From Macrostomum lignano (lineage: Eukaryota), in NCBI GenBank assembly GCA_002269645.1, contig NIVC01000897.1, positions 62,001 to 126,000 on the forward strand: a stretch of DNA of 64,000 nt. Reading direction: 5' to 3'. Made by a program: the position numbers and the translations under genes. A model generated the notes under the pieces. That model had not been told where the DNA came from, did not search any database, and saw only the letters and a list, made by a program, of their open reading frames with translations. Positions within the stretch are counted from its first letter, which is position 1. Each line of letters starts with the position of its first letter. Below, in pieces: positions 14,850 through 23,872 of the stretch.

Positions 14850-17800
14850 TCACTGCGGCTTGAAGCCGGTCTTCTTCAACTGCTGCTTCAGCTTGAACAC
14901 CGGAGAATTGTCGAACGTCTTCCGGCCGTAGACATTGTTGTCTGGCGTGCGCACGATGCTATCAAGCCGGAAGTTCTTCAGGTACAGGATGTAGTCGTTG
15001 AAGTCCTCGGCAACGCGCCACTGGTGGTACCAGTGCATTCGAGGTATCTGTCGGACCTCCTTGTAGCTGAGCAGGCGGTCCGGGCTGGTGCTGTACAGCC
15101 AGATGAAGTTCTGCTGAGCAGTGATCAGGCCTGCAAGATTTCCATTGTCGGAGTCAATAGCCTATCATCACAGGGAGTCAATGCAAGCAATAAAACCTCG
15201 TCCAATCAATAAAGCCAATCAAAGAGCCTAGAGACCGCATATTTATCCTAGCCAATCAAAGAGCCTAGAGACCGCATATTTATCCTAGCCAATCAAAGAG
15301 CCTAGAGACCGCATATTTATCCTAGCCAATCAAAGAGCCTAGAGACCGCATATTTATCCTAGCCAATCAAAGAGCCTAGACAGTAAACTTATCACAGCCA
15401 ATCAACGAGCCTATATCATACACTTATCCTAGCCAATCAAAGAGCCTATATCGCAAACCTATCCCAGCCAATCTAAAAGCGTAGACAGTACACTTATCCT
15501 GGCCAATCAAAGAGCCTAGACCGTACACTTATACCAGCCAATCAAAGAGCCTACGAGTAGACTGTACACTTATCCCAGCCAATCAGCGCATCAGGAAGTA
15601 TTCATCCTCAAAACATCTCGCCCCTGTCAGCAGCCAATCAGCAGCCAAGTCAAGCGCCGAATTTACAAACCGGGCTTGTTCCACGGAATATCCGGCAGGT
15701 CCATCCACTCCAGGCGCAGACGAGTAGCGTAGTCGCGCTGGTTAAGCTCGAAAATGAGGGTTAGCGCCTCGGCGAAGATGGCTGGCAGCATTTTGTTCTG
15801 CGTCTCGGAAAAGAAGTCCGGCTCGTCTGTGTTTGGATACGTCATGACGTCATACAGCCAAGGGTTTTTTTCGTTGTCGACGGCCAGGTCGAGGCCGAAC
15901 AGCTGCCAGGTGCCCGGCTTGTCGAAGATGATGGACTCCATACTGCGCACAATCTCGTGAGCGATGCGGTTCAGCTTGGCGATGAAGTGAGTACCCGAGC
16001 GCAGCTCGTCGTCGAAGGTGCGGAAGTCCAGCTCGGGCAGCTCGAGATCTTTGCACACGGTTGAGTAGGGATGGCAATAATCTGGCAGCTTTTCCGGGTT
16101 GTTGCCCTTGTACCTGCGAAGGATAGGGAAGAAATCACGGCTTTTACAATTCTTTGCTTGGCCAACGGAAATTCTAGTTTGGGGATCAATGCAAATCCTT
16201 GTAGGTTGAAGATCAGTGCAAATCCTTGTAGTTTGGGGATCAGTGCAAATCCTTGTAGGTTGAAGATCAGTGCAAATCCTTGTAGTTTGGGGATCAATGC
16301 AAATCCTTGTAGTTTTTGGGGATCAGTGCAAATCCTTGTAGTTTGGGGATCAGTGCAAATCCTTGTAGGTTGGGGATCAGTGCAAATCCTTGTAGGTTGA
16401 AGATCAGTGCAAATCCTTGTAGTTTGGGGATCAGTGCAAATCCTTGTAGGTTGGGGATCAGTGCAAATCCTTGTAGGTTGAAGATCAGTGCAAATCCTTG
16501 TAGGTTGGGGATCAGTGCAAATCCTTGTAGGTTGGGGATCAGTGCAAATCCTTGTAGGTTGAAGATCAGTGCAAATCCTTGTAGGTTGAAGATCAGTGCA
16601 AATCCTTGTAGGTTGGGGATCAGTGCAAATCCTTGTAGTTTTTGGGGATCAGTGCAAATCCTTGTAGTTTTTGGGGATCAGTGCAAATCCTTGTAGTTTG
16701 GGGATCAGTGCAAATCCTTGTAGGTTGGGGATCAGTGCAAATCCTTGTAGGTTGGGGATCAGTGCAAATCCTTGTAGGTTGAAGATCAGTGCAAATCCTT
16801 GTAGGTTGGGGATCAGTGCAAATCCTTGTAGTTTGGGGATCAGTGCAAATCCTTGTAGGTTGGGGATCAGTGCAAATCCTTGTAGTTTTTGGGGATCAGT
16901 GCAAATCCTTGTAGGTTGGGGATCAGTGCAAATCCTTGTAGTTTGGGGATCAGTGCAAATCCTTGTAGGTTGGGGATCAGTGCAAATCCTTGTAGTTTTT
17001 GGGGATCAGTGCAAATCCTTGTAGGTTGGGGATCAGTGCAAATCCTTGTAGTTTTTGGGGATCAGTGCAAATCCTTGTAGGTTGGGGATCAGTGCAAATC
17101 CTTGTAGGTTGGGGATCAGTGCAAATCCTTGTAGTTTGGGGATCAGTGCAAATCCTTGTAGTTTGGGGATCAGTGCAAATCCTTGTAGTTTGGAGATCAG
17201 TGCAAATCCTTGTAGGTTGGGGATCAGTGCAAATCCTTCTAGTTTGGAGATCAATGCAAATCCTGGTAGGTTGAGGATCAGTGCAAATCCTTGTAGTTTG
17301 AGGCCGCTAATCCTTGTTAGCTCAGCGAAAACGTCAGCACCTGTTATAATCCGGGTCCCAGGTGAATGGCATAGTGAAGTGGCAGCGCAAGTCGTTGCTA
17401 GCCGGGTCGAAATCTTTCTGCGCCTCGCGCACGTAGCCCGGATGCAGGAAGCCGACCACCCTGCGGTCGGACAGCACGCAGATGAGCAGGAACATCCGGC
17501 AGTCAAATCTGCGCAGACCCCTCAGCATGGGATTCTTCAGGTACCTGTACGAAGGAAGATTGAGTTCAGCCGGGAACTGAGTTCAGATGTGTCTGACAGC
17601 TGAATGAGCTCATCATCAAATATCCAGAGCTTTGACAATGAGATTTCCTACTAAGAATAGTAAGTAAAGAGTTTGAACCAGATTTCTTGTAGCGTGTGCT
17701 ACAGTTTCTAATTGATCGGTCTTAGCCTATTGTGGGTTCGAATCTCACTTTTGGACACGCACTTAGAAGACCGAATTGGTCTCCTGACCAGGAGTCGAAC

Positions 17801-23800: not shown

Positions 23801-23872
23801 GATCTGCTCGTCGAACTGCTGCGACGGCTGCTGCTGACTCGACTGCGTCTGTTGAGTCTCCATCTCGGTCAT
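14850..23872 (-). CDS. TTLL10: TTL-family (TTLL10 polyglycylase-like) ATP-grasp protein with degenerate active site; 9 exons: 23455-23872, 22913-22983, 21914-22146, 20674-20962, 19000-19384, 17828-17981, 17341-17544, 15671-16113, 14850-15130 (about 825 aa)
   Basis: TTL motifs in order: FMPESMV, WLIRASSLKGGNG, IMQRYLKNPML..RFDCR, GYVRE..FDPASNDLRCHFT, WQLFGLDLAVD..NPWLYDV..YP, LPAIFAEALTLIFE. All 8 introns are GT-AG and the frame is preserved. Exon 2 boundaries are the least certain. The TTLL10 subfamily call is from recalled similarity. Confidence 0.78.
15213..15585. repeat. About 37-bp CCAAT-containing minisatellite (GCCAATCAAAGAGCCTAGAGACCGCATATTTATCCTA)n, decaying to the right
   Basis: 4-5 perfect units then about 5 diverged units. 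Confidence 0.88.
16175..17300. repeat. 27-29-bp satellite (GGGGATCAGTGCAAATCCTTGTAGTTT)n, intronic copy
   Basis: About 41 units, the same family as 33850-40010. Confidence 0.97.
18040..18943. repeat. 22-bp minisatellite (ATGAGCTACCATCTCCAATCTC)n
   Basis: About 41 units with patterned variants. Confidence 0.96.
19503..20632. repeat. (CAT)n/(CAC) trinucleotide array, about 1.1 kb
   Basis: Seen directly; lies in intron 19385-20673. Confidence 0.98.
21014..21667. repeat. 21-bp minisatellite (GCAATTGGAGCCAACTGAGTC)n
   Basis: About 31 units. Confidence 0.97.
22164..22770. repeat. (AACT)n tetranucleotide array
   Basis: About 150 units. Confidence 0.98.
23035..23402. repeat. (AACT)n tetranucleotide array, second block
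   Basis: About 90 units. Confidence 0.98.

Follow-up and report, generated by a model that had tools for sequence, protein, structure and literature searches.

The minus strand of the 64-kb window analysed here (64,000 nucleotides of Macrostomum lignano contig NIVC01000897.1) carries an intact gene, Mlig011883, whose product belongs to the TTL family. We lean towards the view that its product is a conserved pseudoenzyme, or else a ligase of strongly reduced activity. Residues needed for catalysis in active relatives appear to have been lost from its product, four near-invariant positions being replaced. The window gene is nevertheless a functional protein-coding gene and not a decaying pseudogene.

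Substitutions at the nucleotide- and metal-binding positions

In TTL, D318 and E331 are the ligands of the two Mg2+ ions and R202 holds the carboxylate of the substrate; the E331Q mutant is catalytically dead (PMC3563685). We assigned TTL residue numbers to the window protein by HMMER alignment to TTL. At the positions K150, K198, D318, E331 and N333 the window protein has R, R, D, D and M, such that D318 alone is kept. In particular, R448 of the motif WLIRA corresponds to K150R (with the proline of that motif changed to alanine), R500 of RRFDCR corresponds to K198R, M546 of HFTM to N242M, and D644 and M646 of WLYDVM to E331D and N333M. Residues retained with respect to TTL are G157/G159, Q183, Y185, D200, R202, R222, H239, T241, D318 and D322, and the motifs FDxR, GYVR, LFGLDxxxD, GGNGA and QRYL are likewise kept. 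(An earlier note on this DNA, made from the letters alone, had read WLIRA, RFD, HFTM, WLYDVM and the retained motifs; its readings are correct to the codon, and the positions it gave for the D644 and M646 codons are exact.)

We then counted residues in an alignment of the 149 best TTL-family representatives. The K150 position is K in 139 of these and R in three, the K198 position is K in 147 and R in two, and the E331 position is E in 146 and D in one. The N333 position is N in 134, Q in six, T in three, M in two, and G and D in one each, whereas at D318 only D occurs (with two gaps) and R202 is invariant. The combination of two arginines with the methionine at N333 (R/R/M) is found only in the window gene, its orthologue P0001 and P0003; one further arginine at the K150 position, in P0126, lies outside this sub-clade. 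Thus, the substitutions at ATP- and Mg2+-binding positions to which the earlier note had drawn attention are real, and the states of the window gene are essentially unique among its 149 nearest TTL-family representatives.

The related proteins P0004, P0005, P0006 and P0007 have the usual K, K, E and N. Because R/R/M is confined to the window gene, P0001 and P0003 and these sisters have K/K/E/N, the two K-to-R changes and the N-to-M change date to the common ancestor of the sub-clade. The equivalent of E331 is D in the window gene and in one M. lignano paralogue and E in P0001 (codon GAA, as against GAC), which argues that this position is now drifting between D and E; such variation between orthologues is compatible with relaxed catalytic constraint there. 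The E-to-D change, although real in the window gene, is therefore not conserved. Moreover, the reading of HFTM in place of HLTN as a sign of inactivity carries no weight, since clade members that look catalytically intact (K/K/E/N) are also without HLTN and have HLAG, HITA or no such motif.

D-x-M was found in none of the TTLL10-named proteins checked and in none of the 149 representatives outside the clade. When the window was searched by tblastn with 11 relatives, matches fell only in exons 3-7 of this gene; because the 64-kb window contains no other TTL-like exon, an alternative exon carrying ExN is ruled out within it. The earlier note had called the protein probably an inactive paralogue. 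The substitutions on which it relied stand, and neither tolerant active TTLL10s nor an alternative exon came to light, but the inactivity itself, like tubulin binding and a role in ciliary glycylation, is something that we infer from sequence, and the last of these is speculation.

The gene might instead encode an active ligase with a non-canonical site, in which Arg would serve for both Lys and Asp for Glu, the second metal would be held by phosphate and water only, and the preference for nucleotide, metal or substrate could have changed. We regard this as possible, though on the unlikely side. Several points weigh against loss of activity and in favor of such an enzyme. Three of the substitutions (K to R twice and E to D) are conservative ones that preserve charge. 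The remaining nucleotide pocket is well preserved, with the GxG loop, D200, R202, R222, H239, T241, D318 and D322 in place, and an altered but working enzyme would look alike. The core is under strong purifying selection (see below), the N333 position tolerates Q, T, D or G in some relatives, and P0001 retains E. In addition, the tree described below was built from distances and has no support values, and the structure model reaches only moderate confidence overall. Against an active ligase, even the isosteric E331Q change kills TTL (PMC3563685), and Arg at either Lys position and Asp or Met at the metal sites are nearly confined to the sub-clade, P0126 (with Arg at K150) being the one exception among the 149 relatives. 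Furthermore, all four invariant positions are altered together in a single lineage and unaltered in its sister paralogues. We thus continue to favor a conserved pseudoenzyme or strongly attenuated ligase.

An intact gene under purifying selection

We built the gene model by tblastn against the window with two guides, the NCBI protein of locus Mlig011883 (BOX15_Mlig011883g1, here P0002, 425 aa) and the transcript-derived orthologue P0001 (800 aa). The model has eight exons and a coding sequence of 2391 nt that specifies 796 aa, and all introns are GT...AG. The nine exons and roughly 825 residues proposed in the earlier note must be revised accordingly, whereas the gene ends given there are exact, its poly-Q N-terminus corresponds to a run of 20 Q, and its C-terminal extension of about 100 aa to a basic segment of ~95 aa (701-796, isoelectric point 9.9) beyond the Pfam TTL match. 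P0002 is identical to the window translation over exons 4-8 and reproduces junctions 4-8 exactly, and P0001 is colinear with the window gene through exons 2-8 and bears out junctions 2-8. (Note that the exon 1/2 junction was placed by splice signals and reading frame only.)

Contig NIVC01001827.1 (GCA_002269645.1, which was taken as an older, independent assembly) matches the window from 22175 to 5860 at about 95-97.5% identity and has the same D and M codons. None of the ~2.5-5% DNA difference between the two falls in exons 4-8; the two sequences may be alleles, homeologues or from different lines. P0002 is without the first 371 residues of the window protein, and because this contig breaks off within the (AACT)n array of intron 1, P0002 is best explained as truncated at its 5' end.

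Comparison of the window gene with P0001 by the Nei-Gojobori method gave a synonymous divergence (dS) of about 1.4, which is near saturation, and an overall ratio of nonsynonymous to synonymous divergence (dN/dS) of 0.17. The ratio was 0.48 in the low-complexity N-terminus with its 20 Q, 0.11 for aa 181-440, 0.10 for the TTL core (aa 441-700) and 0.08 for the basic C-terminal extension (aa 701-796), such that conservation is strongest in the exon 8 region. That dN/dS is low under near-saturated dS argues that the window gene is not decaying. Evidence of transcription comes from the orthologue: P0001 is found on two 3-kb contigs, from the RNA-seq runs SRR30276812 and SRR30276804, and since these contigs have no introns, it represents a spliced, full-length transcript. 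In the literature we found no mention of the locus tag, of Macrostomum together with TTL, of the Sequence Read Archive run or of flatworm TTLL pseudoenzymes.

These findings bear on whether the locus could be a decaying pseudogene, or an artefact of annotation or assembly, with no protein function, which we consider very improbable. The very weak Pfam score (45 bits, compared to 197 for canonical TTLL10), introns packed with tandem repeats and the truncated public protein model could be taken to suggest as much. However, the 796-codon frame is intact with canonical splice sites at all eight exons, and dN/dS stays at 0.1 with dS close to saturation. In addition, the orthologue is represented by a full-length transcript, the coding sequence agrees between two assemblies, and P0002 is short because the old contig stops in intron 1.

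A macrostomid clade allied to TTLL10

A hidden Markov model search of the kind that the earlier note had proposed confirmed membership of the TTL family: the window protein matches PF03133 (TTL) with 45-46 bits (cut-off 20.1; E 5e-12 to 9e-12) over profile positions 41-263 of 292. Because its score of 45 bits is far under those of the intact paralogue P0005 (89 bits) and canonical TTLL10 (197 bits), the window protein is very divergent. An AlphaFold 2 model made from a seven-sequence alignment had a mean predicted local distance difference test score of 57, with 70-88 in the core, and Foldseek with this model returned TTLL6, TTL and TTLL11 as top matches (probability 1.0, E ~1e-12). Template-modelling scores were only 0.3-0.5, which reflects the disordered termini. 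The core is thus predicted to adopt the three-domain fold of the TTL type.

To our knowledge, TTLL12 and human TTLL10 are the only recognised inactive members of the TTL family. We searched 1.84 billion representatives exhaustively with HMMER, using a profile of the orthologue pair (A1) as query. Only six proteins fell under 1e-30 and were followed by a long tail of ordinary TTL-family proteins. Cluster names were looked up for a sample of 30 among the 150 best hits, and each of the nine informative ones read either TTLL10 or "protein-glycine ligase, elongating" (an automatic UniRef label, "TTLL9", was disregarded). The matches so named, P0015, P0016, P0017, P0018, P0020 (Schistosoma), P0021, P0023, P0029 and P0033, scored 59-69 bits, whereas profile A1 gave 38 bits with TTL, 22 with TTLL7 and 16 with TTLL3 among Protein Data Bank (PDB) sequences, a set that contains no TTLL10 structure. 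Since TTLL10-named proteins outscore TTL, TTLL7 and TTLL3, "TTLL10-like" is a fair label for the nearest known subfamily, and of the TTLL subfamilies TTLL10 appears to be the nearest to the window protein. A word-indexed protein search, with a single sequence and with a seven-sequence alignment (8000 candidates scored), gave only P0001, P0002 and P0003 among the matches listed.

A neighbor-joining tree of 277 core columns, the distance tree mentioned above, placed the proteins as ((window, P0001), P0003), then P0004, then P0007, P0005, P0006 and P0026. Adjoining these are the M. lignano TTLs P0011, P0012 and P0025, which are TTL-family genes with canonical motifs, and rotifer and acanthocephalan proteins, and all of these stand beside named TTLL10s. 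The description "TTLL10-like" in the earlier note therefore holds insofar as the closest named relatives are all TTLL10, but, as far as a tree without support values can tell, the protein appears not to be a TTLL10 orthologue and belongs to a very divergent clade restricted to macrostomids. M. lignano supplied four of the six close relatives (P0002, which is the window gene; P0003, A0A1I8I2H5; P0005, Mlig029260; P0006, Mlig027481), and run SRR30276812, from which P0001 was also obtained, supplied the other two (transcripts P0004 and P0007).

Members of this clade have in common an N-terminal domain, a Cys/His insertion, the TTL core and a "QNF.W.YST" motif after the core. The insertion, of 60-90 aa, lies between the motifs "(L)T(D/N)K..L" and "F.PE", where canonical TTLL10s have a short Cys-free linker, and C269, C347, C381, H383, C399 and C407 (model numbering) are invariant in seven of seven clade members. 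A search of Pfam with E values up to 10 detected no zf-TAZ, zinc-finger or other domain in the insertion, and the UniRef name of P0003, "TAZ-type domain-containing protein", is thus unsupported by Pfam and serves as a lead only. The insertion may be a novel metal-binding module. P0004, P0005, P0006 and P0007, which share the clade and architecture of the window protein, differ from it in keeping K, K, E and N and in higher Pfam TTL scores (that of P0005 is given above), and are likely to be its active counterparts.

P0026 (M. lignano Mlig027040, encoded outside the window) belongs to the same clade and has KFT for KFD, GIAI for GYxR, ISID for FGxD and EAG for EVN, which makes it a further candidate pseudoenzyme. 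Because its site has degenerated differently, loss of catalytic residues may have occurred more than once in the macrostomid expansion.

Like the TTLL10 polyglycylases, which elongate glycine chains, the window protein has a TTL/ATP-grasp core with a "(Q)NF..(L/W).." motif just after it. Unlike them, it carries the Cys/His-rich insertion and forms a long branch within a clade confined to macrostomids, and it has replaced all of K150, K198, E331 and N333, which the TTLL10s checked keep. Human TTLL10 is described as a naturally inactive polyglycylase (PMC4137062 and PMC5584158, citing Rogowski 2009), and it thus sets a precedent for the persistence of a gene of the TTLL10 type that has no ligase activity. 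The human loss is recent and lineage-specific, whereas the changes in the window sub-clade are under purifying selection and, being common to orthologue and paralogue, old.

TTLL12, like the window protein, is conserved, belongs to the TTL family and has substitutions in its ATP/Mg motifs; non-catalytic roles have been proposed for it (PMC3520985). That the window gene is itself a flatworm TTLL12 deserves almost no credence: the best match among PDB sequences is TTL and not a glutamylase or glycylase, and HFTM resembles HFTV of hTTLL12, but hTTLL12 retains WICK and EVN and has SLDT in place of GxGI and RAMYAVD in place of FExxGFD (PMC3520985), the inverse of the window protein, which keeps GNGA and LFGLD and has WLIR and DVM; in addition, Pfam detected no SET-like domain such as TTLL12 has, all named top hits of the exhaustive search are TTLL10, and TTLL12 is pan-eukaryotic whereas this clade is macrostomid-only.

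Layout of the locus and proposed function

Six of the seven introns are each nearly filled by a different tandem-repeat array (Table 1), the exception being the 283-bp intron 5. These arrays yield long spurious open reading frames in a mechanical list, such as poly-His, poly-Asp or poly-Met frames of up to 536 aa. The 27-bp repeat of intron 6 recurs with 91-94% identity as an array of more than 2.4 kb some 20 kb away, and because of this match the same 27-bp satellite is present both inside and outside the gene. Elsewhere in the window are exons of a glutaminase gene followed by ankyrin repeats, which may be the first candidate pseudoenzyme implied by the earlier note (where Mlig011883 is the second), and a LIM-domain exon with a long translated repeat array directly upstream.

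Table 1. Mlig011883 and other features of the window (positions count from the first letter of the window)
Feature	Position	Strand	Basis or remark
Whole gene Mlig011883, ATG (at 23872) to stop codon (ending at 14850)	14850..23872	-	model built with P0001/P0002 tblastn
Exon 1, aa 1-140, acidic low-complexity N-terminus, poorly conserved	23455..23872	-	model, selection analysis
Run of 20 Q, aa 44-63 (exon 1), species-specific	23743-23684	-	translation
(AACT)n array, intron 1	22165-23402
Exon 2, aa 140-212; similarity to orthologue begins here (KTRAQIF...)	21914..22130	-	tblastn, model
21-mer x31 array	21014-21667
Exon 3, aa 212-308, N-terminal domain common to macrostomid clade	20674..20962	-	alignment
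(ATC)n array	19503-20651
Exon 4, aa 309-437, clade-specific Cys/His-rich insertion	19000..19384	-	clade alignment
Insertion residues C381-x12-C394-x4-C399, C407 and C409	19079-19312	-	spacing
Insertion part HCSLHDGQTYPEHYC	19312-19268	-	exon 4
Insertion part ICSH..C..C..CRCF	19171-19079	-	exon 4
22-mer x42 array	18037-18944
Exon 5, aa 437-488: WLIRA, GNGA (GxGI loop, kept), start of QRYL	17828..17981	-	HMMER mapping to TTL
R448 codon (K150R)	17949-17947	-	WLIRA
Exon 6, aa 488-556: RRFDCR, GYVR (kept), HFTM	17341..17544	-	HMMER mapping to TTL
R500 codon (K198R)	17510-17508	-	RRFDCR; D200, R202 kept
M546 codon (N242M)	17372-17370	-	HFTM
27-mer x41 array, intron 6	16175-17300
Exon 7, aa 556-704: LFGLDLAVD (D318, D322 equivalents kept), WLYDVM	15671..16113	-	HMMER mapping to TTL
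D644 codon (E331D)	15851-15849	-	WLYDVM
M646 codon (N333M)	15845-15843	-	WLYDVM
35-mer x9.5 array	15213-15553
Exon 8, aa 704-796 and stop: basic C-terminal extension, opens with clade motif QNFxWLYST	14850..15130	-	alignment
Second array of the intron 6 27-bp repeat	about 37600-40010
Glutaminase gene exons, then ankyrin repeats	41701-43537	-	PF04960, E 5e-31
LIM-domain exon	about 9500-10291	+	PF00412, E 4e-6

TTL-family enzymes write the tubulin code. We propose that in the R/R/M sub-clade the change of both ATP-phosphate lysines to arginine, and of the Asn that completes the Mg2+ site to methionine (joined in M. lignano by that of the Mg2+-binding Glu to Asp), would most likely have abolished or severely reduced acyl-phosphate formation. 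As the pocket is otherwise retained (the GxG loop, the hinge Q and Y, and the other residues listed above), the fold, and perhaps binding of nucleotide or substrate tail, would persist. The protein could then do non-catalytic work, for example by binding acidic or glycylated tails modified by the intact paralogues so as to compete with, protect or scaffold them. In its boldest form, which we put forward as a long shot, a TTLL10-derived macrostomid family with a possibly zinc-binding Cys/His insertion would have split into K/K/E/N writers and an anciently "dead" but conserved branch that acts as reader, protector or allosteric partner for glycylated or glutamylated tails.

If this is true, a TTLL writer/pseudo-writer pair would have evolved independently of TTLL12, and it may be tied to the unusual microtubule arrays of macrostomid worms, whose sperm are without axonemes. 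The value of the finding is moderate, as it is a sequence-based prediction in one small animal lineage; it does draw attention to an expansion of TTLL genes specific to this lineage and to their uncharacterised Cys/His module. M. lignano is a laboratory flatworm amenable to RNA interference and transgenesis, and an independently evolved, selectively maintained TTLL with a dead site, present beside intact paralogues, would offer a tractable system for the non-catalytic roles of TTL domains.

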